Positions 2,296 through 57,042 of a stretch of 64,000 bases of DNA are shown in pieces (position 1 is the stretch's first letter; each line of letters opens with the position of its first letter). The translations under genes were made by a program, and so were the position numbers. The notes beneath the pieces were generated by a model. That model was not told the DNA's origin. It worked only from the letters and a program-made list of their open reading frames with translations, and did not search any database. The stretch spans positions 62,001 through 126,000 of the IMG/VR virus record IMGVR_UViG_3300031884_000002. The stretch is one strand, 5' to 3'.

Positions 2296-3744
2296 TTAGT
2301 TAGCATTAAAAATATGAGTAGTATAACCAGCACGATAGCCAGCAATATATAATACATGATTATCACTATCGGCGGCATCAACATCACCTTCAAGGTATCG
2401 AGCCGGATTATTATCAATCATATCATTGGCACCGGCTACAAATCCTTCAACAAAATGATTATTATTACTATTTGGAACTCGTTGTAACACCATCTGCTGA
2501 ATAATATAACTAACCACTTGAGCGAAAGTTAATTCTTTATTATTTTCTACTTTTTCGGCTTCTGAATCAGAAATATCAATCTGAAATATTTCTTCCATTG
2601 CCATAAGTAATTCAACGCCATCCAATGAGTCAAGTCCGCATGAATGAATCTTATCAGTTAATTTAATTTCAGGATTAACTCCTAAATCTCCATATAACTG
2701 TTCATGTGTCAAATCCCTAATTTGAGACCATATATTTTCAATAAACAATAAAGGTCTCTTTTCCACCTTGGAAATATGTGCTTCAACGGGAATTGGAGAT
2801 TCAATCGGAAAATTAGTTGTTAATGCATCAATTTCTTCATTGGCTTTCTTTTCAATTTCACAAATACATTCATTGTCTATATTGATAGGAGAAGCACACT
2901 TGCTACAATGACAATTTTCCATTACAGAACCACATCCATCACAATAATCATCTCCAACTGGAGTAGAAGGAACCGTAGTGTTTTCATTATTAAATACCAA
3001 TGGAAGATAATTCTCCAATTCTCCAATTACTTTATATTTACAAATACGATGTTTTTGAAACTCACAGTCCCTTGGAACTGTAACAAAATCTACGGGGTCA
3101 ATTTCAACCAGAATGACTCGTTTTCCATATTCTCTGGCATATTCCAAAGAACCGGCGTGAAGTCCGGGACCACATTCAGTTAAATAATTGTCACATACAG
3201 ATGAACGTTCAACTTCAATCGTGGAGCCAATAGTATTAAGAATACGTCCCTTTTCATCCACTTTACCTTGTAAAACTACAGTTTCGAGATTTCCAGTAAT
3301 AGACCAATAATCTTCATTAACCCCCTTATATGCAATTACAAATCCAGCATCCGTCAAAGTCAATCCCAAATGTTCCATAAATTTATAAGATTCTTCGATT
3401 GCCCTTTGCGATGGATTTTTACGAAGACGTTCAATATAATTGGCAATTGGTTGATAAGGAAATCCCGATTTAAGAAATGCCATAACCCGTTGAGCATCAA
3501 ATGTATTAATATGCCGACCATTATAAGTTACACCGGCAGTATTAACTGAAAGTTTTCCATTTGAATATTCCTCAACAACAGTTTTCATAGAAATCAATCG
3601 TTCAAGCAATTCCTTATTTCCAGCCTTGAATGCGTCTCGCAATTCATTCCATTTTGGATGGTCTGATTTTGCCGTTAGAATCTGTTTCCCATTATCAATA
3701 ATGAGAGTCAATGTTTCGTTAATTAAACTGGATGCGGTAATCAT
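2296..3744 (-). CDS. rIIB: rIIB-like protein fused to a Cys-rich linker and an acyl carrier protein domain
   Basis: rIIB motifs AYKGV, CGPGLHAGSLEYA and VEIDPVDFVTVPRDC..K.R.CKY; ACP motif GLDSLDGVELLMAMEEIFQIDISDSEAE; lies downstream of rIIA. Confidence 0.85.
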   Translation of the reverse strand: MITASSLINETLTLIIDNGKQILTAKSDHPKWNELRDAFKAGNKELLERLISMKTVVEEYSNGKLSVNTAGVTYNGRHINTFDAQRVMAFLKSGFPYQPIANYIERLRKNPSQRAIEESYKFMEHLGLTLTDAGFVIAYKGVNEDYWSITGNLETVVLQGKVDEKGRILNTIGSTIEVERSSVCDNYLTECGPGLHAGSLEYAREYGKRVILVEIDPVDFVTVPRDCEFQKHRICKYKVIGELENYLPLVFNNENTTVPSTPVGDDYCDGCGSVMENCHCSKCASPINIDNECICEIEKKANEEIDALTTNFPIESPIPVEAHISKVEKRPLLFIENIWSQIRDLTHEQLYGDLGVNPEIKLTDKIHSCGLDSLDGVELLMAMEEIFQIDISDSEAEKVENNKELTFAQVVSYIIQQMVLQRVPNSNNNHFVEGFVAGANDMIDNNPARYLEGDVDAADSDNHVLYIAGYRAGYTTHIFNAN

Positions 3745-4286: not shown

Positions 4287-6665
4287 TTAAGCCGTAACTA
4301 ATTCTTCCGGTTGAATATCAACTAAATCAACTACATCGGTTTTAACTGTTTCCGTATATTCATTATATAAATCAATCGACTTGATATATTTTACAAAATT
4401 ATTACGACTAATTTCATTATTGAGTGAACCATTTCTCATATTATGCCAATTAATATAAGGATAGATTTTAATGATTTCATTTTTAATATCTTCAATATTA
4501 ACCGTTGGTTTAATTCCTTTAACAAAATTACACCAAATATAAAGTTGTTGAATAGCATCAATAAATCCAGTTGTATCTTTATTTTTATTAAGAGAAAAAG
4601 AAGTATTAAACAATTTAATCAATACATGATTATCACCTAATTCTTTAGTTAGAAGTTCAGCCTCTTCAATGTTAATAACCGAAGTATCGGCATATTGATT
4701 AACCAAATCTTGAGGATTAATATTGGATGATATACTTTCTACAATAAACTTATCCAGCGGCAACCAAGTTTTATTTTCAATAGCATTCTCAAACCATTTG
4801 GCACCAGCGGTAATACTATCAATAATATAAACCCTCTCAATATCCAAGTTCAATTTATCATTGATAGTTTTAATATATCCCATCACATCACTAACATAGA
4901 TTTCATTATCATTAAACTTGATTTTATTTCCACGAAAATAATTCTTACGTCCACGTTTACTTGGTGCTTTATATAGAAAATAAACGTCTTCATCAATATC
5001 TTTAAATGCAACATCGGACTCTTCAACCTCTTCCGATACAAAATCCATATATTCCATCTTACGAATAACCGAAGTCCAACTACCACCCGAACGAGTTCCT
5101 TTATTAGCAGAATACCAAACCTTGGCATCGGCCAACAAATCGGATAGATTTAGAGTCGGCACAGTATCAAAATTATATTCTTTATAGAATGCAGATTTAA
5201 TATTATTGGTTTCAAAGTTCAATACATGAATAATCTTATATTGATAATTTTTAGAAAATAACAAATACCGCATAACCATAGCCATTCCGCTTCTCTTATT
5301 GGTATCGTTAATAACAACTCCAACCTTATCGGATGCTGTAATTCCATTATAAACATTAGATTTGCATTTAAAAGTTTTAATCCGGTTCTTCTTGGGACGA
5401 TAAGTAGTCATTACTGGAGCATATGGATTATAATCTTTTCCATCAAGGTTGTCCGAAGATAATGCATTATCAAATCGATTAATATGTCTAAAAGAAGCAT
5501 CTGTAATTGGAATACCATTCCAAATAAGTTGTCCCTTCAACGTATCTTCCAATTTAGATAAATTACCAGCCAAGATTTTAATATTATCAATGGCAATACT
5601 GCCATCTTCCGTTTCAATCGGCAAACCACTTCCGAAAATAGAATTATATATTTTCTTTGCTTCCCAGATATTAAAAGCATTGGAAAACTTTTCCTGCACT
5701 GATTCCTTGATTTTGACAATAATATCTTCAATTTTAGAAATTAAAGCCTCCAATGTCAATTTGGAATATTCTAATGCCTCTCTCGAAGGAACAAATTCCA
5801 AATCACCCATTTTATATTTTAAAACTAAATCATTAGAATGAAGCAAATCCAATAAAGCACGGCTCTTACTATCAATCGGCAATTGGTTGGAAATTTTATT
5901 AAAATCCAAGGGGTAAGAAACGTTTCCCATGTAAGCCACCGCAACCGCAGCATATCCAGATTTGGGACGAATTTCCCAACCATCACCTTTCAAGGTGGCT
6001 GGAGTAGTCCTGAATTTATCAATTTGTAATTGATATTCATCATTCAGATTAACGAGTTGAGGAAGCATTTCCCAATATTTAAAATAATTAGCGGCTTCCT
6101 GATGAATATCATACATCATTTCACTTTTAATAGGAATACAAACTTCAATGCCGGTAGGTTCATCAGAAACAATACGAGCCATTTCATAAATTTGAGGAAG
6201 TTTAGTTTTATCTCCCTTAATAATTTGATAAATTGCCTTTTCTCCTTTATTCCAAGAAGTAACTGTCATAGAATCACTTACACATTGAAAAGATTTTGAT
6301 CCAAATCCCCACGAACCATTAAAATCATTGGAATTTCTACGTGTAGATGTTCCCATATTACAATAAATTTTAACAATTTCCTCGGCATTCAATCCAGCAC
6401 CAAAATCTCGGAATTTAAGTGTCAAATCATTATATACAGGCAATGTAACTATAAAATCAGAAATTGGCTTCTTGGCTTCAATATGAGCGTCAAAAGCATT
6501 GTTAGCATATTCCCTCACAACTGCCAATTCTTTCTTGGAATACATTTTATCAGATAGACAATCCATAATTCTGGCTCTCTCAGCAGCATCAAAATCAACT
6601 TGTCCAATAAGTTTTACACCGGAACCATTCGTTTCAATCGTCTGTTGTGTTTCGTTGGATATCAT
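4287..6665 (-). CDS. rIIA: rIIA-like protein (N-terminal GHKL/Hsp90-like ATPase)
   Basis: REYANNAFDAH, RDFGAGL, STRRNSNDFNGSWGFGSKS and PSREALEY motifs; paired with rIIB. Confidence 0.88.
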   Translation of the reverse strand: MISNETQQTIETNGSGVKLIGQVDFDAAERARIMDCLSDKMYSKKELAVVREYANNAFDAHIEAKKPISDFIVTLPVYNDLTLKFRDFGAGLNAEEIVKIYCNMGTSTRRNSNDFNGSWGFGSKSFQCVSDSMTVTSWNKGEKAIYQIIKGDKTKLPQIYEMARIVSDEPTGIEVCIPIKSEMMYDIHQEAANYFKYWEMLPQLVNLNDEYQLQIDKFRTTPATLKGDGWEIRPKSGYAAVAVAYMGNVSYPLDFNKISNQLPIDSKSRALLDLLHSNDLVLKYKMGDLEFVPSREALEYSKLTLEALISKIEDIIVKIKESVQEKFSNAFNIWEAKKIYNSIFGSGLPIETEDGSIAIDNIKILAGNLSKLEDTLKGQLIWNGIPITDASFRHINRFDNALSSDNLDGKDYNPYAPVMTTYRPKKNRIKTFKCKSNVYNGITASDKVGVVINDTNKRSGMAMVMRYLLFSKNYQYKIIHVLNFETNNIKSAFYKEYNFDTVPTLNLSDLLADAKVWYSANKGTRSGGSWTSVIRKMEYMDFVSEEVEESDVAFKDIDEDVYFLYKAPSKRGRKNYFRGNKIKFNDNEIYVSDVMGYIKTINDKLNLDIERVYIIDSITAGAKWFENAIENKTWLPLDKFIVESISSNINPQDLVNQYADTSVINIEEAELLTKELGDNHVLIKLFNTSFSLNKNKDTTGFIDAIQQLYIWCNFVKGIKPTVNIEDIKNEIIKIYPYINWHNMRNGSLNNEISRNNFVKYIKSIDLYNEYTETVKTDVVDLVDIQPEELVTA

Positions 6666-6748
6666 AATTTAATAATTTGTTATGCTCCAAGAATATAGAT
6701 TTTAGATTAAAAGTCAATGAAAATATTTTCGATTTTTGTAATGTTACG

Positions 6749-7270
6749 TTTATTTATTTTGACTACCTTAATTAAGAATATTAACGAAGACATCGCCAAT
6801 CCCCCGAAATACTCAAAATATCCTTTATTTATTTTGACAGCGGCAATCGCAGAGCAACTGAATACCGATGGAGTCCCCGAAATACTAAAAATATCCTTTA
6901 TTTATTTTGACTCAATTGAAGAACTTGGTAATCCATAAAGATTTACACCCCGAAATACTCAAAATATCATTTATTTATTTTGACATTCGATATTTAAGGT
7001 CCTCAATATCAAGGTCATACCCGAAATACTCAAAATATCCTTTATTTATTTTGACATGATATGGGAGATTAAAAGTAATCTGGCTCCAGTTCCCGAAATA
7101 CTCAAAATATCCTTTATTTATTTTGACTTTATATTCCAGCCTAATGATTTTAATCGATCAATCCCGAAATACTCAAAATATCCTTTATTTATTTTGACCA
7201 ATTGCTCCATTCATATATTAATAAGGGAGTAGTACCCGAAATACTCAAAATATCCTTTATTTATTTTGAC
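6749..7270. CRISPR. CRISPR array 1: 7 full 36-bp repeats plus 1 partial, 7 spacers of 35-39 bp
   Basis: CCCGAAATACTCAAAATATCCTTTATTTATTTTGAC at 6803, 6876, 6949, 7020, 7092, 7163 and 7235 (two copies with single substitutions); partial copy at 6749-6763; internal stem TCAAAATA/TATTTTGA; unique spacers. Confidence 0.98.
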
Positions 7271-7459
7271 AGCCTTCCCGTAAAGGGTTTATTGTCAACT
7301 ATTTAAAAGGCTTTCCACGAGCGGCTATATCAGAAAAGATATAACCTAACTCATGCTAGGCATGTCGGATGCCTAAATATTTGTCAAAGAACAACTTACA
7401 TCTTGCGAGCGGTTATGCGTAACTATCTCATCACCACACCGCTCGCAAGAAAAATTAAA
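7271..7459. promoter_or_regulatory. CRISPR leader / possible scaffold RNA region
   Basis: Non-coding; 13-bp perfect inverted repeat TCTTGCGAGCGGT (7401-7413)/(7438-7450); third CGAGCGG copy at 7318-7324; 7-bp hairpin at 7357-7375. Confidence 0.7.
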
Positions 7460-7639
7460 TTACCATCCTCTACGTTTATTTTGACTACAAAGTTTTTTAT
7501 AATTCAACTCTTCTTCATTGGTTAATCTCCAATATGTAGCCCCCTCTATTCGTTTTTCTCGATGTTTTTTTTCAACAAAGGAATGAGCGTCTCTAAGAAT
7601 ATTATTTTTTATTTCTGTTTTATTTCTTCTGTGTCGCAT
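7460..7639 (-). CDS. 59-aa basic ORF overlapping the effector 3' end (below the ORF-track cutoff)
   Basis: Hand translation MRHRRNKTEIKNNILRDAHSFVEKKHREKRIEGATYWRLTNEEELNYKKLCSQNKRRGW*. Confidence 0.5.
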   Translation of the reverse strand: MRHRRNKTEIKNNILRDAHSFVEKKHREKRIEGATYWRLTNEEELNYKKLCSQNKRRGW

Positions 7640-8973
7640 AATGTAAACACCATACCTCGTGATTCAATGTTATTTTTTAAAGTAGATTTAAACTTGAACC
7701 AAGGGAATTCACCGGCTAATTTAAATCCTTTTGTTGTGTTTAGTACAATTTCATTACAACAAGTTCTTTCGGCGTGTTTACATAACATAGCTACAGTTTG
7801 TTTAATAAAAGCATCGGTTCTTTTTTCAAAATTGTTAGCGACAACTGCTGATTTGCTATTAAAACACGAAACATTCCCAGAACGACGTTCACATTTTCTA
7901 TCCTGTGAAAACCTATCAATATATTCTCTTCTTTTTTCTGACAAATGAACTCCATAATCCTCAGATAAAATTGATTGGAGTTCTTTTAATTTATTTTCTG
8001 GAATATGAGGATATAATTCTTTAACTGTATTAGCATCTAATACTTTGGATAATAATATCTTTTCCTCGGCTACCCATCTGTTAATATTATCTGCGTTATA
8101 CACTTGGAACTTTCTACCACCAACCCACATAGCAAGAAAAGTATCAGGGGCAGTAAATAACATCATTGTTCTATTATTTTTTTTGTCTAAAAGAGAACGT
8201 GGTTGTTTTACTACAATTTTAACTTTATAAGCAGCTTTTTGTTTGTTCCCATTATCATCTCGTTGAGTGATAGTATGATGATGAACTCCTCCTACTCGTT
8301 CACGAACAATCGCACAACTTCCCCATTTAGCATTTCCTTCCATTATTGCTTTCAAGTTTCCATGCTCTCTGCCAAAATTATCACCTCCCGCCAATCTTAA
8401 TTGAATTCTATTATTTATTCTTCCGCATCCAATTACAAATTCTATTACATAAGCAATAGACCCACAAGTATTTAACACTTTTATATCACAAGCCACAGAA
8501 GGTATTTCTAATGGTTGTCCTTCTTTATAGAAGGGTTGATTTTCCCGCCCAAGAAACACAAGCAACTTCTTTTTATTAAATAATTTAGTAATTTTATTCT
8601 GAAGAGTCGATGCGATTACTGATGATGGAATTAAAGGAAATAATTTCCGTGCTTCATTATAAATTTTCTTTTGTAGGGCATTATATTTTTCCTTAGATGG
8701 AGAAACATATTTTTCATCCAATCCACTTTTAACTGGTTCGCTCTTAAACAAGGATGATAACGCCCAATTATGAAACAAATCGTTTTGCTTAAATAATTCA
8801 TCTAATCGAGAATCAACTTCTTTCCATTCCATATTAAGAGGTTCTGCAATAGGTAGGGTAATGGAAAATACATTACTTACAGTATCCGCTGTAAACGCAT
8901 ATGGCTTGGGTTCCTGCCATAGCCAACCATCTCGAAGTTCGAGCAACCCTTTTTTATTTACTTCAAATTTCAT
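7609..8973 (-). CDS. Cas12f/TnpB-like type V effector, predicted nuclease-dead
   Basis: Adjacent to the array. YNEARKLFPLIPSS resembles the in-window TnpB segment YKIKELFPTLPSQ. GRENQPFYKEGQPLEIP and IMEGNAKWGSCAI resemble Cas12f WED/REC segments. RuvC-I position reads MLFTAPD (no IDLG) and RuvC-II reads IVLNTT (no E). FPWFKFKSTLKNNIESRG is followed by the stop, with no Zn finger or RuvC-III. Confidence 0.75.
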   Translation of the reverse strand: MKFEVNKKGLLELRDGWLWQEPKPYAFTADTVSNVFSITLPIAEPLNMEWKEVDSRLDELFKQNDLFHNWALSSLFKSEPVKSGLDEKYVSPSKEKYNALQKKIYNEARKLFPLIPSSVIASTLQNKITKLFNKKKLLVFLGRENQPFYKEGQPLEIPSVACDIKVLNTCGSIAYVIEFVIGCGRINNRIQLRLAGGDNFGREHGNLKAIMEGNAKWGSCAIVRERVGGVHHHTITQRDDNGNKQKAAYKVKIVVKQPRSLLDKKNNRTMMLFTAPDTFLAMWVGGRKFQVYNADNINRWVAEEKILLSKVLDANTVKELYPHIPENKLKELQSILSEDYGVHLSEKRREYIDRFSQDRKCERRSGNVSCFNSKSAVVANNFEKRTDAFIKQTVAMLCKHAERTCCNEIVLNTTKGFKLAGEFPWFKFKSTLKNNIESRGMVFTLCDTEEIKQK

Positions 8974-29002: not shown

Positions 29003-29237
29003 AATGCTATGAGTATAGCGATATAGTTTTAAAAGTCAAGAGTTAAAAATATTGTCACTTTTTTGTTCTTTTTTAATTTCCATACATTATGATAAATGTA
29101 AATAAAAATGATTTCATATTATTATTTTTTATATTCTAAAACTTCTACATTAGCATTTTCAAAATTTTCAAAATACCCATGCCAAGTTCCAGTATAAACA
29201 TCTTCGATTATTCCGCTTGATAATTTAACTTTTATAA

Positions 29238-30242
29238 TGTTATTATAAAATTAAAGAATTATTTCCAACTCTCCCATCTCAATTTATTATAAAAATGGAG
29301 CAAGATGTTATTTCAACGTATAAATCCATAAAATCTAATAAACATAAACTGGAGTTTCCGGCTATTAAAAAATCATTATCCATTCAACTTGACAAGCGTA
29401 TCTATAAGTGGATAGACAGGAACCATATAAAAATCACCACTCTAAATAAACAAGCAATCTGTTCTTTTAATGCTTATAATAAATTAAAAGAGATGGACTT
29501 TTCTAAATTAAAAGACCCAAAATTGTTTTATAAAAATAAACAATTTTACTTGTCCTTGATATTTGATGATAATAAACAATTTACTGATAATAACAAAGTA
29601 TTAGGAATTGACTTAGGATTAAAACGAATAGCAACATTAAGCAATGGAATTATATTCAAAGGAAACGAGTTTAACAAACATAAACGTAAAATTAGATGGA
29701 ATAAACGTAAATTACAATCCAAGAAAAATAATTCTCATTCTGCTCGTAAAAAATTAAAATCATTAAGAAGAAAAGAAACCAATTTTAGTAAAAATTACAT
29801 ACATAATTTAACAAAAAATATAATTATAAATAATAAAGAAAATATTTTAGTAATCGAAGATTTAAGTAAAATTAAAGTTAAGAACAAAGGAAAGAGATTT
29901 AACAATCGGTTAAGTCAATTACCATTTTTTAATTTTAGAACCATACTAACATACAAGGCACAACTATATGGAAAAATAGTTGAAACGGTTAACCCTGCTT
30001 ACACCAGTCAAATAGACCATAGAGGATTGACAAGTGGAACACGTAGAGGATGTAGATATTATGGTTCAGACGGAACAATGTTAGATGCCGATGTAAATGC
30101 GGCACTAAATATTGGAAATCGGTATAAAGATAATAAATCTTTAACCAAACACTCCATTTCGTGCTGTAAAGTACTTGATGGACAGGTGAACGTCAACTCA
30201 CCAATCGTCTCTATCAGTCAGAGGCAAGCACCGACCCTTTAG
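29238..30242 (+). pseudogene. tnpB: 5'-truncated TnpB (IS200/IS605 family)
   Basis: GIDLG, IEDL, YTSQ and DADVNAALNI. Homology to the 46660 TnpB extends upstream of the ATG at 29295 (CYYKIKELFPTLPSQ) to a TAA at 29235, so about 45 N-terminal aa are missing. Confidence 0.8.
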
Positions 30243-43992: not shown

Positions 43993-46614
43993 ATGATTAA
44001 GCTAATTGACCTTATAGTTGAAAGAAGAAGTCATCCCAAGTTAAATCCGAAAACCTCAGTGGCGTCTCAAATATTAGAGTTTTCAAAACAAGACGATTTG
44101 TTTGTATCATTTACTGCAATTGCCAAAATCGGAATAAATCCAAAAAGTAACTATGATACTCCTCTTGGACTGTATTGTTATCCACTTAAAACCGCATCGA
44201 ACTATTATACTAAAAATAATAAATTAGGAATTGATTTTCCATTTGCATCGGAACATCCATATCTATATGTTCTTAAAAAAAATGAAGGCATTCGAGAACT
44301 TAATATAACTACATATACCAAAGAACAAGGAAATCAAGACATAGATAAATTAATAAGTGTATATTCACATTTTTTTGAGCCGGATGCATTACAAATCCTT
44401 AAAGCTTCATGTAGTCGAAATACGAAATTTTCCAGAGAGCAGATTGGAGAGTTTTGGTATTTTTGTAAAAAACTGTCGGAAATGATTGCTCAAATTAAAA
44501 ATACAAAACCGACCATTATATGGAACATATTATTATATAAGAATCTTGGATATGATTTGGTTATAGATGAAGGAAGAGGAGTTATACATGGAAATGAAAA
44601 ATGTCAAGCATTCTTTACAAATAAAAGAGCATTCAGCGTTTATAGAGTGTTGGATAATCCATATTCCGAAGAAAAATCAGTAAGACGTAAACATATTAAT
44701 TACCAAGCATTAACTAAAAATATTAAAAATCTTAAACAATATATAGAATATAAAAAAGACGAATTAAGTTATAATGATATTACAAATATACTACACTGTG
44801 TTCAAAACTCTCCTCAAGTTGTACATTATTTAGCCGCAAATATCCCATTAACAGAATCTAATATAGATAGTCTTTTTAATAGAACTCAAGATAAACAGGG
44901 ACTTATTGATATTTTACTTAATCGAGATATTCCGCTTACAGATTATAATATAACTGTATTATTATCCAATTCTCCAGACCTAGAAAAAACGCTGGAAATA
45001 TTATTAAATAAAAATATTCAATTTGATGATGATATTGTAGAACGTCTATTGCGGGCTGCAACTGATAAAATAAAAATGGTTAATATTTTATTTGATAAAA
45101 ATATTCAATTAACTAGTAATATAGTGGGGTCGATGCTTACTATAGTTCCAGATAAGAAATATATAGTTCATATGTTATTAAATAAAGATATTCCTCTGGA
45201 TGATATTACCATTCATAATTTATTATCACACTCCCCCGATAAAAAAGATGTAGCAGAGTTTTTATTAAACGTAAAAGGAGTTTTACCAAATGCTATATTT
45301 ACTTCTGACAATATAGAATATATGTTAAAAACGGTAATGGATAAACAACAAGTTGTAGATTATTTATTAAGTAAAAATATAGAATTAGATATGGAAAGTA
45401 TAATAAAATTAATTATAAATGCTCCAAATAAACAACAGATAGGAGATTATATAACAAATAAAGATATTATATTATCACAGTATTGCATACAATCCTCAAT
45501 ATATGATTCGGATGATAAAGAATCAGTAATCAATATGTTTCTGAAATGTGGAATGCCGCAAGATAAAATATTTACAAACGATGTGATAAACCATATTATA
45601 ATCACAGCAAATAATAAAAAACATTCAATTGATTGGTTGTTAAGTCATAATATTGGATTGGATGAAAGTAATATTATTAATATTTTAAGATATTCGGTTA
45701 ATAAACAAGCATCGATTGAGTATATATTAAACAATTATGAAATGACAAAGACGGTAATAGATTATTTATTAGTAGAATCTCCCAACCAATTGGATACGCT
45801 TGATGCTTTACTTAGTAAGAATATTCAATTATCTCCAACTTCTATAAATATTATTTATCAAGCATCAAACGATAAAATAAAAACATTAGAAAATCTATTG
45901 AGTAGAAATGTTCCACTAAAACCTGATAATATATACTATCTATTACATAATTTTCCCAATTCTATGCAAATTTCAGATTATATAATAAATAATGTTACAT
46001 TGAATGGTGAAATTATAAGTTCAATAATTAAATATACTCCGAATAAACTTAAAACGATAGAGACATTACGAAATAAAGGAATTGATATAAATAAATTATC
46101 AACCCCAATAGACACAAATATATTTATAACGGCTGTAAATAAACAAGAAAACCTAGACGCATTATTAAAATCGGGAATGTCAATAAATACTATATTTAGC
46201 GATGAAAACGTAGAAGAATTATTAAATAATTCATATAATAGGGATGATTTGGTTGAATTTTTATTAAACAATAATGTACCTCTAACTTCTAACAATGTTA
46301 GTAACTTAATCAGGTATTCCTCTCATAGTCAAAAACCAAAAACAGTCTATATTTTACTTAATCGAGATATTCCACTTGAAGACCCTAAAGTTGTAAGTTA
46401 TATAGTAAACCATGCCCCAAATAAAGTAAAAACGTTAGACATGTTATTAGACAAAAATATAAAAATATCAAAAGACCAAATAGACGACTTATTTGCATAT
46501 TCGACTTGCTCAGAAACTAACGAGCTTATAAAGTATTTTAAATTTAATGATTTACCTCTTCCAACCGGATATATAGACGAACGACTCCATATATATAAAG
46601 AATATTATAGTTGA
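43993..46614 (+). CDS. 873-aa protein with an N-terminal globular domain and ~29-aa helical repeats
   Basis: Recurring LLN(K/R)(D/N)I.L...I..LL..SPDK units from about aa 260 to the end. Confidence 0.75.
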   Translation: MIKLIDLIVERRSHPKLNPKTSVASQILEFSKQDDLFVSFTAIAKIGINPKSNYDTPLGLYCYPLKTASNYYTKNNKLGIDFPFASEHPYLYVLKKNEGIRELNITTYTKEQGNQDIDKLISVYSHFFEPDALQILKASCSRNTKFSREQIGEFWYFCKKLSEMIAQIKNTKPTIIWNILLYKNLGYDLVIDEGRGVIHGNEKCQAFFTNKRAFSVYRVLDNPYSEEKSVRRKHINYQALTKNIKNLKQYIEYKKDELSYNDITNILHCVQNSPQVVHYLAANIPLTESNIDSLFNRTQDKQGLIDILLNRDIPLTDYNITVLLSNSPDLEKTLEILLNKNIQFDDDIVERLLRAATDKIKMVNILFDKNIQLTSNIVGSMLTIVPDKKYIVHMLLNKDIPLDDITIHNLLSHSPDKKDVAEFLLNVKGVLPNAIFTSDNIEYMLKTVMDKQQVVDYLLSKNIELDMESIIKLIINAPNKQQIGDYITNKDIILSQYCIQSSIYDSDDKESVINMFLKCGMPQDKIFTNDVINHIIITANNKKHSIDWLLSHNIGLDESNIINILRYSVNKQASIEYILNNYEMTKTVIDYLLVESPNQLDTLDALLSKNIQLSPTSINIIYQASNDKIKTLENLLSRNVPLKPDNIYYLLHNFPNSMQISDYIINNVTLNGEIISSIIKYTPNKLKTIETLRNKGIDINKLSTPIDTNIFITAVNKQENLDALLKSGMSINTIFSDENVEELLNNSYNRDDLVEFLLNNNVPLTSNNVSNLIRYSSHSQKPKTVYILLNRDIPLEDPKVVSYIVNHAPNKVKTLDMLLDKNIKISKDQIDDLFAYSTCSETNELIKYFKFNDLPLPTGYIDERLHIYKEYYS

Positions 46615-46659
46615 TTGTCAAGGTATTCTTTAATTGTCTCTAAGTCAACAACACCTACC

Positions 46660-47799
46660 CTAAAGGGATAGGTGCTTGAACGGCCCCGAGGAGCGGGACT
46701 TATATTCGTATGGCGTATTGACTGACGCCTGCCCATAAGTCAGATTTGTGGTCTGTGATACGGGATGTTTGGACATTTTTCCAATGTTGATAGCAGCATT
46801 GATGTCCGAGTCATATATCATTCCATTTACTTTAGAGTAAAATCTACAACCTCTTCTTTCACCTTCGACTTTACCCGTTACCGAGTCTCGTTGTGATGTA
46901 TAGGAAGGGCAAACAAACAGAACAGTTTTACCTTGGTTCTGTGCCTTATAGGTTATTACTCTACGGAGTTCAAACATTGGAACTTGTGATATACTTCTTT
47001 TATTTTGGTATTTGTGTTTCTTTCTTTTTATGCTCTTGAGGTTTTCAAGACAAATTGTATCGGCTTCCGTTCGGAGAACGGCATTGGAAATTAGATGGGT
47101 TTGGTTCTTGTTCTTGTTTCGTTCTTTTCTTCGTAACGAATAACGAAGTTTCCTACGGGCACTCTTCGTTCCCTTGGATTTGAGTTTGTCTTTCAAGTAT
47201 CTCAATCTTCGTTTTTCACCGTTGAACTTCTTATCAATAATAAGTCGCCCATCCGAACAAGCAGCACTCCTACGGATGCCGATGTCCACTCCTAATGCCA
47301 ATCGTTGTTTGAGTTTTTCAACTTTGTTTTCAAAAGAGAAAGCGATACATACTTTATCATTATCCACATATATTAGAGGGTCTTGGTATGCGTATTTTTC
47401 CATCAACTCTTTCAGTCGTGGATAGACAACAAACTTGAAGGTCTGTCGTTTTCCTGTGGTCGTGATGCGAATAGAAAACTTATCTGGGATTGAGTAAAGT
47501 CGTTTATCCAATCTCATTGAGAGGTTCTTTTTTACAATGAGAGTTTTCTTATGCTTATTGGATTTCGCAGACCGATAGGAAGCAAGAACTTCTTGTTCTG
47601 CTTTGATTATTACTTGGGATGGGATTTCTGGATTTGACTTACGAACATTTTTATACACTTTGGAGTGAAGAACTACAAGAGAGTTCTTTGTTTCTGGTAG
47701 TTGTTCCTTGGAAGCAAGGTTGAATACAAACCTTTCGTATTCAAGCAACTTTTTCAGTTCTTGACAATCTCCTAAAAGTGTGGTATTGTAACTCAACAT
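46660..47799 (-). CDS. tnpB: TnpB RNA-guided nuclease (Zn-finger-less)
   Basis: GVDIG, LENL, YTSQ and DSDINAAINI. Confidence 0.92.
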   Translation of the reverse strand: MLSYNTTLLGDCQELKKLLEYERFVFNLASKEQLPETKNSLVVLHSKVYKNVRKSNPEIPSQVIIKAEQEVLASYRSAKSNKHKKTLIVKKNLSMRLDKRLYSIPDKFSIRITTTGKRQTFKFVVYPRLKELMEKYAYQDPLIYVDNDKVCIAFSFENKVEKLKQRLALGVDIGIRRSAACSDGRLIIDKKFNGEKRRLRYLKDKLKSKGTKSARRKLRYSLRRKERNKNKNQTHLISNAVLRTEADTICLENLKSIKRKKHKYQNKRSISQVPMFELRRVITYKAQNQGKTVLFVCPSYTSQRDSVTGKVEGERRGCRFYSKVNGMIYDSDINAAINIGKMSKHPVSQTTNLTYGQASVNTPYEYKSRSSGPFKHLSL

Positions 47800-48278
47800 A
47801 GTTTTAGATTTTTGGATATTTTTTGTATTCGTGAAAGGAATTCGTTATCATCAAAATATGATTTTAACATATTACATCCCTTACAGCAAACTACACAGTT
47901 TTCTTTTGTATAACCAATTTTATTATTTTTCCTATCTAAATTATAAGCACAGGTGGCACCTACCTTTCGATATGGTTCCCATTTAACTAATTCCCCACAA
48001 TAATGACAATTGGAAATTTTTGTTAATTCAAGAAATTCATCAAAAGTTAAATCTACAATAATATTTTTCGTTCTATGTTTTTGAGAATTTAGAAGAAAAT
48101 TATATAAGGAACGAAAGGGAGGCAAATGCCGTTGTTTATTTCTCATTGTTTCTCTTGTTTTTTCGGTCAATATTTCAATTTCTCCGTTTTTATAAAGAAT
48201 ACAAAAACAATCACGACACCAATTAGACCGCACGTCTTTTTCTTTTCCACATTTACAAAAATTTCTCTTGTGTTTCAT
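47793..48278 (-). CDS. HNH-like endonuclease inside the IS
   Basis: CHYCG...LDRKNNKIGYTKENCVVCC..CN..K. Confidence 0.75.
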   Translation of the reverse strand: MKHKRNFCKCGKEKDVRSNWCRDCFCILYKNGEIEILTEKTRETMRNKQRHLPPFRSLYNFLLNSQKHRTKNIIVDLTFDEFLELTKISNCHYCGELVKWEPYRKVGATCAYNLDRKNNKIGYTKENCVVCCKGCNMLKSYFDDNEFLSRIQKISKNLKLC

Positions 48279-48514: not shown

Positions 48515-48889
48515 ATGAGTGATTTCAAAGTAATAGAAAAAGCGTTTCCGAGCAGAGAACCTGAAAGTGGTATTCCACCAGAAACAAGATGGATTATTGT
48601 TGATGCCAACGACAAACTTTTGGATGATGCTGGTGGTTATGGATACAAAACCAAACAGAATGCTTTGAAAGCGGGTTGGTATAAGTTTCAAGGTGGTAAA
48701 AACAAGATTGACGAAATCAAATCGTGGTGGAAACAGAATAAAGCATTCTCACGAAGATTGAATAGATTTCAGGAAGATAACTTCAAAGAGATTGCTTACA
48801 ACCAAATCAACTTTGAAGAAGAGACAGTCAAAATTGCCAAAGAAATGAACATTGACGGGTTTGAAGTAAAGTTTTTGAAGTATTTATGA
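48515..48889 (+). CDS. hypothetical passenger protein coupled to tnpA
   Basis: Promoter at 48479-48506; LDDAGGYGYKT motif; ATGA overlap with tnpA. Confidence 0.7.
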   Translation: MSDFKVIEKAFPSREPESGIPPETRWIIVDANDKLLDDAGGYGYKTKQNALKAGWYKFQGGKNKIDEIKSWWKQNKAFSRRLNRFQEDNFKEIAYNQINFEEETVKIAKEMNIDGFEVKFLKYL

Positions 48890-49269
48890 GCCATAGCAAG
48901 TATCTGCTCCAATTCCATTTAGTTTTTTCAACTAAATATCGTAAAAAGATATTGTCGGGAGCATTGAGTGATGACTTGAAGCAGATTATGTATGATATTG
49001 CTAATGAGAAGGATATTATCATCAAAGCAATGGAGACGGACGATGACCACATACACCTAATGGTTGACTATCCTCCTACAAAGTCGGTATTAGAAATGAT
49101 GAATAACTTCAAGTCCATTTCAACATTTAGAATATACAAAAAACATAGAGCATTTCTCAAAGGGCATTATTGGAAGGAAAATACTCTATTCTCTGATGGA
49201 TACTTCGTTTGTTCCATTGGGGAAGCATCTCCAGAAACAATCAAAAAATACATACAAACTCAGGGATAA
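48886..49269 (+). CDS. tnpA: IS200-family Y1 HUH transposase
   Basis: HLVFSTKYR, DHIHL and YFVCSIG...IKKYIQTQ. Confidence 0.96.
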   Translation: MSHSKYLLQFHLVFSTKYRKKILSGALSDDLKQIMYDIANEKDIIIKAMETDDDHIHLMVDYPPTKSVLEMMNNFKSISTFRIYKKHRAFLKGHYWKENTLFSDGYFVCSIGEASPETIKKYIQTQG

Positions 49270-50429: not shown

Positions 50430-50681
50430 ATGTGATTAAATCCACATTTGCTTCTTTAATGACACACCAGTGATGGAGTAATATATACGATGAAGGGTGA
50501 AGTGTTAGATGATAAACAAATTATTATTTAATGACACAAATATGGTTTATATGTAAGTCCATAATTATCAAATGTGTTAGATGATAAACAAATTATTATT
50601 TAATGACACAACGTAAACGGAACCGTCAGGCGACAGCAACACCGAGTGTTAGATGATAAACAAATTATTATTTAATGACAC
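50430..50681. CRISPR. CRISPR array 2 (orphan): 3 identical 36-bp repeats plus 1 degenerate, three 36-bp spacers
   Basis: GTGTTAGATGATAAACAAATTATTATTTAATGACAC at 50502, 50574 and 50646; 23/36-identical copy at 50430. Confidence 0.93.
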
Positions 50682-51429
50682 AAAGAGAAGTGTGATTTTG
50701 ATATTGACAATCAATCAGATTAGGATATAATGTTAAACATTATGAATATACATCTCCTTATAGGACAACGAAAAGAAAAATATGACGGAGAATATGCTCC
50801 TGAAGTATTGGAAGCGATGGATGAATATGGGTATAATGAAAATCCATTTTGTTGGTTAAATGAAAAATTAAAAGAATACCAAGATACTAATGAGTTTGAA
50901 GCAGTTAAAATCATAACTATTATGGTGCCGCATTCGGAAATTATGAAACAACTAATACCAAATGACAAACCAATTACTGCGGCAATAGTTAATCCTTGAC
51001 ATTTTATAAAACTCCTATATACTTCTATTACTATGAAAAAACTAAGTGCGATTATTTACTCTATATTCTGTATAGCCGTGGCAATGGTAGGTTATAACAT
51101 TAACGTTGCGGCAAATAGTAACTGGCCATTATTCTGGTCGATTATGGATTATATTTTCACTCCTATTACTATTGCTAAATGGATGATTTGTCAACAACTC
51201 AACATATCCATAATCAAACATACCTTTGCGTTTTTCTTCAATTAAACTTCTCCTTGACTTCAATTCTATAATCACTATAATGTGGTTATGACAAAAAAAA
51301 TAAAATTAAAGTTTAAAGGAAATAGATTTTCACAAGCATTTGAGTTTTTACGCAATTCATTACAAATCCTTTTTACTGGTAAAACTTCAATTGAAGTTAA
51401 CTTAGAATTAACAAAAAATATATAATACT

Positions 51430-52753: not shown

Positions 52754-53614
52754 TTGAAGGATATGAATAAAAAACAATTTACTAAAGATACATCACCATT
52801 TCCATTATTAAATAATAAAGAATGGCTATATCAGAAATATTTAGTTGAAAAATTAAATACAGAAAAAATTGCCAAGTTAGTAGGCTGTGCGAACGGAGCA
52901 ACGATTAGTAGAAATCTTAAAAAATTTAATATTCCGATGCGAAGTTATAGTGAACGTAAACGCAATGCTAATGTTAATTATTTAAAACTAAATATGCCAG
53001 TAATCAATGGATCTCTTCTAGGAGATGCGTTTATTACTAAACAACGTATAAAAAATGGAAGTTGTGGAATATCCAAACGAAATATCCATTATAATCATCT
53101 ATTATATTTTGCCTCTAAAATATTGACAAAAATCCCAGAATCAAGAATTTTTGGTCCATATGAATCTTCTACAAACCTAACTCCAAATGGAAAGCCAGTA
53201 TATTTTCTAAATACATTTAAATTACCAGAAATAGCCGAATTGCGAAATAAATGGTATCCGAATGGAATCAAGATTATACCGAAAGATATTGTTTTAACAA
53301 AGGAAAGTTTATTACATTGGTTTTTGGATGATGGATATTCATATTTTTACAAACAGCGGTACAAAACAACCGAGTATAAATATACACGAGTATTTTTTTG
53401 CACAAATAATTTTACAAAAAAAGATTTAGAATGGTTATGTGTAAAATTAAAGAACGAATTTAATCTTAAATTTACACTATCAAAGAAAGGAATTCGAAAA
53501 GATGGAACTCAGTCATATTTATTAAAACTAAGTGATACTCAAGTAGAAGAATTTTTTAAACTTATAGGGAAATGTCCCGTAAAAGAGTTAGAATATAAAT
53601 GGAAAATTGTTTAA
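52754..53614 (+). CDS. LAGLIDADG homing endonuclease
   Basis: GSLLGDA and HWFLDDG; WYPNG.K..P; CTNNF. Confidence 0.88.
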   Translation: MKDMNKKQFTKDTSPFPLLNNKEWLYQKYLVEKLNTEKIAKLVGCANGATISRNLKKFNIPMRSYSERKRNANVNYLKLNMPVINGSLLGDAFITKQRIKNGSCGISKRNIHYNHLLYFASKILTKIPESRIFGPYESSTNLTPNGKPVYFLNTFKLPEIAELRNKWYPNGIKIIPKDIVLTKESLLHWFLDDGYSYFYKQRYKTTEYKYTRVFFCTNNFTKKDLEWLCVKLKNEFNLKFTLSKKGIRKDGTQSYLLKLSDTQVEEFFKLIGKCPVKELEYKWKIV

Positions 53615-55774: not shown

Positions 55775-57042
55775 GTGAATGCTCCCAACCTCTAAAGAGG
55801 TTGGGCTTCTATCCTAACTTGCGTTAGAAAAAGAGTCCATTCCGACTCTTAAAATATTTCTTGCAGCATTCAAATCCCTACCAATGTTAAGATTACAAAT
55901 AGGACATTTGTGTTGTCTTTCTGACAACTCTTTCTTAACAATGGTTCCGCATCCCGAGCATATTTGGGTCGTGTATCGTGGGTCAACATTTACTACTTCA
56001 CAGCCAGCTTCTACCGCTTTACTATGGAGCATTTGTCTAAATGCTGCCCAACCCGAGTCCAATATGCTTCTATTCAACGCTCGCCAATTGTCATTCAACA
56101 TTTGGCTTGGTCGAATATCTTCCACACAAATATGAGAATACTCGTTCACTAGTTTCTTGCTCAACTTGTGTAGGAAATCTTTTCGTTGGTTCTTCACTCT
56201 ACAATGGAGTTTAACCAATTCTCTCTTGGTCTTTATCTTCGTCTTGTCATCCTTCGGTTTAAGTTTCAGTTTGGAATACTTACCTTGGACTTTGGAAAGT
56301 TTCTCCTGTGATTGTTTAAGAAAATGAGGATTAGGAATAGTGGTTCCATCCGAACAGGTCACAAAGTCAATACATCCAACATCAATCCCAACTGCTCGTT
56401 TCCATTTTCGTTTTTCAATCTTCACTTCAACTTCACACGAGAAAATAGCATACCAATGTGTGCCTTCACGCTTAATGGTCAAGGTCTTTACCTTGCCTTC
56501 CATTGGTCGGTGGAAGTTAATACGAACGTCTCCAATCTTGGACATCCACATTTTCTTCTTTCCTATCTTAAATCCTGTCTGTGGAAAGGTGAAGGAGTCA
56601 TACCGGTCATAGGACTTAAAGCGTGGGAAACCTGCTTTTCCACTCTTATCCTTCAATCTGCGGAAGAACCCAAGATAGGCAAGGTCAAGTCGGGCAGATA
56701 CGTTTTGGAGGACTTGCGAATGGACTGGAGTTTTCAGTTCCATATCCTTAATTATTTTACAACAATCAAAGTGAGTTAAAGTTTTCTTGGTCTTCTTGTA
56801 GTGGTCGTTTCGCTTCTCAAGGAGTTGGTTATAAACGTAGCGACAAGTATTCAGCGTCTCTTGGAGACGGATAGCACTGCCTCCTTTGGGAGACAATTTG
56901 AACTTGTAATTGCGTTTTACTTTCATTCTATAACATACATATCATCCACTTTAAGGAAAATGTTATTTTATTTCTGTTTCCTTAATATGGTCGTCATTCA
57001 TCCCCTTGGCTAAAGCCGAAGGGGCTTTCTGACTCCAAAAAT
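55775..57042 (-). mobile_element. IS1341-like element (tnpB only)
   Basis: Minus-strand left end TTAC|...AAAG-hairpin ccccttcggctttagccaagggg; right end GAAG-hairpin cccaacctctttagaggttggg...TCAC. Confidence 0.88.
55814..56926 (-). CDS. tnpB: canonical TnpB with HTH and Zn ribbon
   Basis: YKFKLSP, GFPRFK, GIDVG, VEDI, CSGC...CPIC and RDLNAARNI. Confidence 0.96.
   Translation of the reverse strand: MKVKRNYKFKLSPKGGSAIRLQETLNTCRYVYNQLLEKRNDHYKKTKKTLTHFDCCKIIKDMELKTPVHSQVLQNVSARLDLAYLGFFRRLKDKSGKAGFPRFKSYDRYDSFTFPQTGFKIGKKKMWMSKIGDVRINFHRPMEGKVKTLTIKREGTHWYAIFSCEVEVKIEKRKWKRAVGIDVGCIDFVTCSDGTTIPNPHFLKQSQEKLSKVQGKYSKLKLKPKDDKTKIKTKRELVKLHCRVKNQRKDFLHKLSKKLVNEYSHICVEDIRPSQMLNDNWRALNRSILDSGWAAFRQMLHSKAVEAGCEVVNVDPRYTTQICSGCGTIVKKELSERQHKCPICNLNIGRDLNAARNILRVGMDSFSNAS

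Follow-up and report, generated by a model that had tools for sequence, protein, structure and literature searches.

Short CRISPR arrays carried by viruses, through which the CRISPR machinery of the host is exploited against related viruses, form an established class (reviewed in PMC11656645). These viral mini-arrays, found in archaeal portogloboviruses and in many phages, are short, devoid of cas genes and canonical in anatomy, with repeats that are usually identical to those of the host and with one or two spacers that match related viruses and differ between them (PMC11656645). A freshwater cyanophage, N-1, is on record with a cas-less array that is termed functional in the title and abstract of its description (PMC4916379). 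A further set of phage-borne, cas-less, repeat-derived elements, comprising the RNA anti-CRISPRs (Racr) and the viral crRNA-like regulators, acts on an effector encoded elsewhere and consists mostly of solitary repeat units or of guides with partial matches (PMC10651486; bioRxiv 10.1101/2024.10.29.618823). Where among these does a regular array belong that sits in the genome of a lake-water jumbo phage with no effector gene beside it? The array in question, array 2, shares with the viral mini-arrays its shortness, its want of cas genes, its canonical anatomy and spacers that differ between what are probably related viruses, but it has three spacers and neither a host repeat nor a target has been found for it. 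With cyanophage N-1 it shares a freshwater origin and a cas-less array, and with Racr and its kin a repeat-derived, phage-borne character, although it is a regular array with full-length spacers.

Array 2 occupies positions 50430-50681 of the window, by which is meant the whole stretch of 64,000 nucleotides that was analysed, bases 62001-126000 of a 353,772-bp virus record rated complete by IMG/VR. The phage is a T4-like jumbo myovirus from lake water that encodes a Gp20-type portal, a tail sheath and an rIIA-like ATPase. The nearest match to its DNA polymerase, at 39% identity, comes from a Microcystis phage, which may be taken as a weak pointer to the host. The array consists of a decayed repeat followed by three units of spacer plus full repeat (Table 1). 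The three full copies of the 36-nt repeat are 100% identical and recur with a start-to-start period of exactly 72 nt, made up of the repeat and a 36-nt spacer, and the three spacers, each 36 nt long, are mutually unrelated. Array 2 thus has the generic make-up of a CRISPR array: at least three direct repeats, nearly identical and within the range of 23-55 nt, with unique spacers of much the same length between them. When the whole genome was scanned by k-mers, only two regular arrays appeared, this one and array 1 (6803-7271), and the exact repeat occurs three times in the phage genome and nowhere else in it. Since the repeats, the spacers, the k-mer scan and the repeat count agree, the coordinates and the description given in the original prediction, a 36-bp repeat with fixed 36-bp spacers, prove exact, and its remark that the third spacer is GC-rich is borne out by measurement.

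The decayed repeat is identical to the full repeat at 23 of 36 positions, including all of the last 11 nt; it preserves the ...TTTAATGACAC end and retains mainly the last 11-15 nt. Its left half is a small hairpin with a T-rich run, lying right after the stop codon of the gene for an HD phosphohydrolase.

Table 1. Features of array 2, its surroundings and other loci discussed here (window coordinates).
Feature	Position	Strand	Remarks
Degenerate terminal repeat ATGTGATTAAATCCACATTTGCTTCTTTAATGACAC	50430..50465		in register, 72 nt before first full repeat
Spacer 1, 36 nt	50466..50501		40% GC over the 35 nt measured (50467-50501); unique in genome
Full repeat 1, GTGTTAGATGATAAACAAATTATTATTTAATGACAC	50502..50537		boundaries backed by variant unitig of run X23
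Spacer 2, 36 nt	50538..50573		19% GC; unrelated 36-nt spacer in its place in X23 unitig
Full repeat 2, GTGTTAGATGATAAACAAATTATTATTTAATGACAC	50574..50609		identical to other two full copies
Spacer 3, 36 nt	50610..50645		56% GC; phage GC about 30%
Full repeat 3, GTGTTAGATGATAAACAAATTATTATTTAATGACAC	50646..50681		identical to other two full copies
Right flank of array 2	50682..50731	+	22 nt, then early-type promoter of 89-aa ORF 50730-50999
HD phosphohydrolase, SpoT/RelA type, 161 aa	49939..50424	+	Pfam HD E 4e-6; TIGR00691 spoT_relA E 3e-10; phrog_990 metal-dependent phosphohydrolase E 3e-25
Array 1 compact CRISPR system	6731-8973	minus	array 6803-7271, non-coding RNA 7272-7465, protein 7609-8973
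482-aa protein with acyl-carrier-protein domain	2296-3744		
873-aa ORF, about 40-residue helical repeats	43993-46614		no family match; left of array 2
TnpB gene	46660-47799		2.6 kb left of array 2
Endonuclease VII/HNH-like gene	47793-48278		
IS200 TnpA	48886-49269		
PARP protein, 424 aa	51430-52704		PARP catalytic E 8e-21; PARP regulatory E 3e-9
LAGLIDADG endonuclease	52754-53614		
Second TnpB gene, canonical	55814-56926		5 kb right of array 2

Fundamental to the assignment of array 2 as a CRISPR-type element is its behaviour in other samples, for which the contigs of public sequencing runs were aligned to the region. The array is identical in lake runs from 2020 and in one freshwater run from 2023. 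A further search of the runs with the array alone brought no additional samples, and no RNA run was among those in which the phage occurs. A pond run, X23, yielded a 102-nt unitig in which a different 36-nt spacer, CATAATAGGCTAAACTTTTTAATAGACAATCAGCAC, stands between two repeats: both ends align to the array 2 repeat, the repeat portions show no differences from those of array 2, and the mismatch extends across the whole spacer. The unitig has a depth of 2.43 against 2.4 for a 151-nt piece identical to positions 51045-51195, an equality that makes a related phage, and not a cell, the likely source. The array 2 repeat is probably present with other spacers in a related phage, the repeat being conserved while the spacers turn over. 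The spacer variation expected of CRISPR arrays, the same repeat with other spacers, is thereby seen in one low-depth unitig, which also fixes the 36/36 boundaries independently. As the same repeat with a different spacer of equal length is a signature of CRISPR, the unitig argues against evenly spaced binding sites or terminators.

The exact sequence of the repeat has no match in IMG/VR and, in JGI metagenome records, is found only in the phage's own contig; blastn gave no match among GenBank phages and at most chance single sites in plasmids. It is absent, allowing up to three mismatches, from 401 sampled cyanobacterial genomes and is also absent from four genomes reached through other loci, and its letters do not occur in the text of open papers. 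The comparison with CRISPR repeat databases that had been proposed as a check brought no match, in that the Rfam CRISPR-DR families gave nothing relevant at either gathering or relaxed thresholds. A GTDB-wide scan with a loose pattern, three AATGACAC motifs (the 8-nt end) at CRISPR spacing, returned at least 120 loci, all with unrelated repeats among the matches listed. The repeat of cyanophage N-1 reportedly belongs to a family common in cyanobacteria; the array 2 repeat is found neither in the sampled cyanobacterial genomes nor in Rfam. In lake runs X1 and X18, where the phage is abundant, the 38-nt unitig of the repeat has 2.9 times the depth of its flanks, as for three copies and no more, which rules out, for these samples, a host array of appreciable size that shares these 31-mers.

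The spacers are equally without counterparts. The proposed search for their targets yielded none: neither the three spacers of array 2 nor the X23 spacer has a protospacer in GenBank phages, in IMG/VR, in the phage's own genome or in the relatives that were fetched, the IMG/VR queries being cores of 22-26 nt from all four (for array 2, the central 24 nt of spacer 1, 26 nt of spacer 2 and the central 22 nt of spacer 3). Relatives sought through the HD protein were not found, and the more distant ones reached through a 70-aa neighbour protein (76% identical) lack array 2, which marks the array as recent in this lineage.

What protein could use the array? Neither Cas1 nor Cas6 is found in the phage genome. 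Outside the window, a Pfam scan of 17 of the 18 ORFs of at least 600 aa, a PADLOC search of nine of these that had no Pfam match and fell within the size limit, and a PHROGs search of five of those nine all gave no Cas effector, and none linked to array 2 emerged from the large window ORFs tested against Pfam, PADLOC and PHROGs. Where the scans gave a match, it was to a polymerase, portal, sheath, baseplate or similar protein; among solved structures no relative was found for three large ORFs that lack annotation, two of which resemble tail proteins. The 873-aa ORF to the left of the array was considered as its effector and set aside on account of its repeat-rich translation and want of a Cas match. 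The sole Cas-like protein, whether next to the array or elsewhere in the genome, belongs to the other repeat family. Array 2 is therefore an orphan, of canonical CRISPR-type anatomy with no effector gene alongside, as the original prediction had it. The accompanying idea of a second phage effector outside the window is weakened, as the whole genome was searched and none was found, and the proposed search for effectors or identical repeats in the rest of the genome likewise ended with no effector and with the repeat confined to array 2.

The other repeat family is that of array 1, whose Cas12f-like locus is the more unusual of the two in this window. Cas12f models match only the first half of its 454-aa protein, the predicted structure of which (pLDDT 83) matches AsCas12f (E 6e-18) and a nuclease-dead Cas12f (TM 0.73). 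In alignment with canonical TnpB the protein has no GIDxG first catalytic motif, carries asparagine in place of the second catalytic glutamate, and ends after the second catalytic motif with neither zinc ribbon nor third motif. By these losses it appears truncated and nuclease-dead, and would bind DNA without cutting it; the system is grouped with related dead TnpB/Cas12f systems such as dCas12f (PMC13472631), TldR (bioRxiv 10.1101/2023.11.30.569447) and Cas12m. The protein has 284 remote homologues; ten of these were checked, and none gave a significant match to a Pfam family. For each of its four closer homologues (46-79% identity) an array follows the gene immediately downstream and on the gene strand. 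Across these and the present locus, five in all, the repeats are 36 nt long and differ in sequence but share a TTCGGG end where the repeat meets the spacer; gene and array are separated by a non-coding RNA of about 190 nt whose nucleotide sequence is conserved even where protein identity has fallen to 46%. This RNA is still recognisable beside a homologue at 27% identity by alignment (32% by phmmer). The TTCGGG end and the placement of the array on the gene strand in the relatives establish that array 1 is read on the minus strand. The opposite reading, in which shared ...TTTTGAC and ...AATGAC ends would link the repeats of both arrays, is ruled out by the invariant TTCGGG on the gene strand in those relatives, and the 792-aa ORF beside array 1 (4287-6665) is ruled out as an effector by being a GHKL/HSP90-like ATPase. 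In two samples with the same Cas12f-like protein (loci L006:9677-10385 and L007:2475-3196) the gene-distal spacers are common and the gene-proximal ones differ, which indicates that spacer gain in array 1-type phage arrays is ongoing and polarised, though the window's phage has no Cas1. Many spacers in these arrays are also much GC-richer than the phages.

Array 2 shares with array 1 a genome, the 36/36 periodicity and the placement of a decayed end-repeat, and differs from it in lacking the TTCGGG end, the upstream non-coding RNA and an adjoining effector gene. Neither that repeat end nor a non-coding RNA of about 190 nt is present on either strand, and the identity between the two repeats is at chance level, which upholds the claim that they are unrelated. 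Array 2 has no link to the Cas12f-like protein.

The direction in which array 2 is read is a matter on which two kinds of evidence point in opposite ways. RNA folding favours the plus strand: the repeat folds at -7.9 kcal/mol on this strand versus -2.8 on the minus strand, the stem being at least 11 bp long and dependent on two G-U pairs. Folded as plus-strand RNA, the complete array shows three strong hairpins and has z = -2.8 (none of 200 shuffles folds as well), the minus strand having z = -1.4. With its hairpin and a tail of 6-8 nt (AAUGACAC), the plus-strand repeat is similar in form to repeats cut by Cas6-type enzymes. The minus strand is favoured by where the decayed repeat lies. In array 1, which is read on that strand, the decayed copy is the one most distant from the leader, with only about its first 15 nt preserved, and a minus-strand reading of array 2 gives its decayed copy the same arrangement. 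The sole non-coding flank able to serve as a leader is moreover the right side, 50682-50729, again for a minus-strand reading; a plus-strand reading would put the decayed copy nearest to any upstream leader, an awkward arrangement for the insertion of spacers. No strong promoter was detected ahead of the array on either strand, and a consensus scan gave no intrinsic terminator at it. Of the predicted plus-strand transcription, then, the 11-bp stem with its G-U pairs is real and that strand does fold better, but the decayed-repeat geometry and the right-side leader speak for the minus strand.

The array lies where it was originally placed, between the HD hydrolase stop codon (5 nt to its left) and the promoter at 50704 (22 nt to its right). 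The left neighbour, with its SpoT/RelA-type matches, is not an HD domain of the Cas3 or Cas10 type. The promoter to the right, TTGACA-N16-TATAAT at 50704-50731, agrees with the consensus at 12 of 12 positions, and similar ones at 50996 and 51254 stand ahead of the next two small genes. Near-perfect promoters of this form, at these three sites and at 46622 on the minus strand, precede successive small genes, and two of the sites have the extended motif TTGACAATCAA in common. Such near-perfect promoters point to a host that uses a classical sigma-70 rather than a Bacteroidota-type promoter. The surroundings are rich in mobile genes (TnpB, TnpA and endonucleases), and the statement that there is no cas gene stands for the immediate flanks, with the qualification that two TnpB genes are nearby, one 2.6 kb to the left and one 5 kb to the right. 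Free-standing homing endonucleases are frequent in this phage (window 11628-12812, 52754-53614 and 58533-59483); outside the window, the T4-like portal gene has an intein bearing an HNH endonuclease (G000:295032-299294) and the PhoH gene a Hint/LAGLIDADG insert (G000:330739-332616). The presence of both PARP domains in one protein is unusual for a phage.

The phage has six TnpB genes, at 46660-47799, 55814-56926 and 29217-30221 in the window, at G000:7362-8474 and G000:16153-17283, and as a 442-aa frame ending at 332942; one of the six has two in-frame stops. Comparison of copies shows that four of them have a common guide-RNA end, a TTTA-loop hairpin followed by 8-9 nt, an end that the copy at G000:16153-17283 seems to have lost. 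The repeat of array 2 has no link to these genes. Neither continuity with a tnpB 3' end nor the terminal hairpin expected of an omega RNA is seen for it, and its best alignment to a TnpB guide RNA scores 24, below the 26 that marks the 95th percentile of random genome segments. A genome-wide search for partial copies or complements of the repeat reached a top score of 30 versus 29 in the shuffled genome, so that neither an anti-repeat nor a tracrRNA candidate stands above the background.

The explanation that accounts best for these observations is that array 2 is a genuine orphan viral CRISPR-type mini-array whose RNAs serve an effector provided in trans, the host being its most likely source, a reading to be taken tentatively, at somewhat under an even chance. 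Among its rivals, most weight goes to a decoy or regulatory RNA, followed by a remnant in decay, a source of guides for the Cas12f-like protein of the phage itself, a repeat that is not CRISPR at all and, last, a TnpB-linked array. That array 2 might yield an RNA decoy or regulator, soaking up or misdirecting the effector of a host or rival without attacking targets, is unlikely but has precedents, in cas-less, repeat-bearing phage loci that are known to work in this way (PMC10651486; bioRxiv 10.1101/2024.10.29.618823) and in the solo guide RNAs of VIPR systems (bioRxiv 10.64898/2026.10.15.759431). The three strong hairpins of the plus-strand RNA would suit such a role, and the location of the array among early-type promoters makes early expression plausible. 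RNA anti-CRISPRs are, however, typically solitary units that mimic a host repeat, and in place of the solitary repeat unit without functional spacers that marks Racr there are here three full-length unique spacers, one of which differs in another sample (X23), a combination that points to selection on guides; nor was a matching host repeat found in JGI metagenomes or in the 401 cyanobacterial genomes. The decoy RNA anti-CRISPR of the original prediction is accordingly a poor fit. VIPR-type guides, considered because of those solo guide RNAs, are ruled out for array 2, as the GGYNN repeats and pseudoknot tail are not seen in its spacers. Equally unlikely is a non-functional, decaying remnant that has lost its effector gene, for instance through the traffic of IS200/IS605 elements and homing endonucleases. 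Consistent with decay are the small size of the array and its one degenerate repeat, the want of a cas gene, of a clear leader or promoter and of any target found, a region full of TnpB, TnpA and LAGLIDADG endonuclease genes, and the absence of the array from the more distant relatives with the 76%-identical neighbour protein. A neutral relic in a phage of 30% GC should nevertheless gather differences, and the three full repeats are 100% identical to one another and show none from those of the X23 unitig, which comes from a different water body.

Slightly less likely again is that array 2 provides additional guides for the Cas12f-like, nuclease-dead protein of the phage itself (7609-8973), which would silence targets by binding DNA. 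This protein is the sole CRISPR-associated effector candidate in the phage, the two arrays have the same unusual 36/36 architecture in the same genome, and in both the same portion of the repeat survives in a decayed copy at the left end; but the TTCGGG end and the non-coding RNA of about 190 nt that characterise the family are absent from both strands of array 2, the repeats are no more alike than chance allows, and the pairing predicted between the array 2 repeat and the non-coding RNA is weak and large-looped. Another reading, which we regard as improbable, sees related jumbo phages contending array against array, with array 2 on one side: its RNAs would serve or jam the dead Cas12f-like silencing system of this phage family, and rivals would carry spacers against array 2. 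It takes its lead from a 1292-nt contig of run X23, where 18 nt are identical to positions 50650-50667, within the array 2 repeat, and the preceding 30 letters are GAGTAATTCGGG ATTATGATAAATTTATTG: a TTCGGG is there followed by exactly 36 nt, composed of 18 unmatched letters and the 18 of the array 2 repeat. A relative's counterpart of the conserved non-coding RNA of about 190 nt is likewise present in run X23. The array 1-type locus of a rival phage may thus carry a spacer related to the array 2 repeat, which is offered as a lead only; the match, confined to the half of the spacer far from the repeat, may also be an AT-rich chance match. The guide-RNA-targeting solo guides of the recently described VIPR systems provide a parallel. 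It is very improbable that array 2 is no CRISPR array and consists of evenly spaced protein-binding sites or terminator hairpins. The copies number only three or four, they are intergenic, between a gene end and a promoter, and the decayed copy overlaps a terminator-like hairpin and T-rich run, yet the spacers are unique and of exactly equal length, an unrelated 36-nt spacer lies between the same repeats in X23, the hairpin has no further copy in the 354 kb, and the consensus scan registered no intrinsic terminator. Least credible of all are split guide RNAs for one of the six TnpB nucleases, an emerging TnpB-CRISPR hybrid. This would draw on the two nearby TnpB genes, 2.6 kb and 5 kb away, on a repeat whose outline is like that of a guide-RNA end (a hairpin, a short tail ending GAC(AC), then a variable part), and on a stretch of 14 nt, matching at all but one position, that lies downstream of the TnpB gene at 55814. 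That match is ruled out as being at chance level and lying beyond the guide-RNA end, which comes 8-9 nt past the TTTA-loop hairpin; the alignment score of the repeat is below the 95th percentile of random segments, and the genome holds no scaffold or anti-repeat to pair with it.

With the orphan mini-array as the preferred reading, a course of events can be proposed. Array 2 would be transcribed and cut into RNAs of repeat plus spacer, and these would load onto an RNA-guided effector encoded elsewhere, most likely that of a CRISPR-Cas system of the host or of a co-resident element. The phage could in this way turn the effector on targets that it selects itself, typically competing phages or other mobile elements. 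The insertion of new spacers would likewise depend on a Cas1-Cas2 provided in trans, since the phage lacks its own. The main weakness in reading the effector as that of the host is that no host repeat has been found and that the depth data exclude a sizeable identical host array in the phage-rich samples.

Array 2 adds one case to the known class of viral orphan arrays. If it is active, two RNA-guided systems whose repeats are unrelated operate in this phage: one uses the phage's miniature, apparently nuclease-dead Cas12f-like protein, the other an effector from outside the phage genome. Array 2 is also a natural test of whether a dead Cas12f-like protein takes foreign repeats. Its partner, once found, would identify a CRISPR system of the host or of a rival, and would reveal what a T4-like jumbo phage targets, be it competitors, host defences or host genes, for example.
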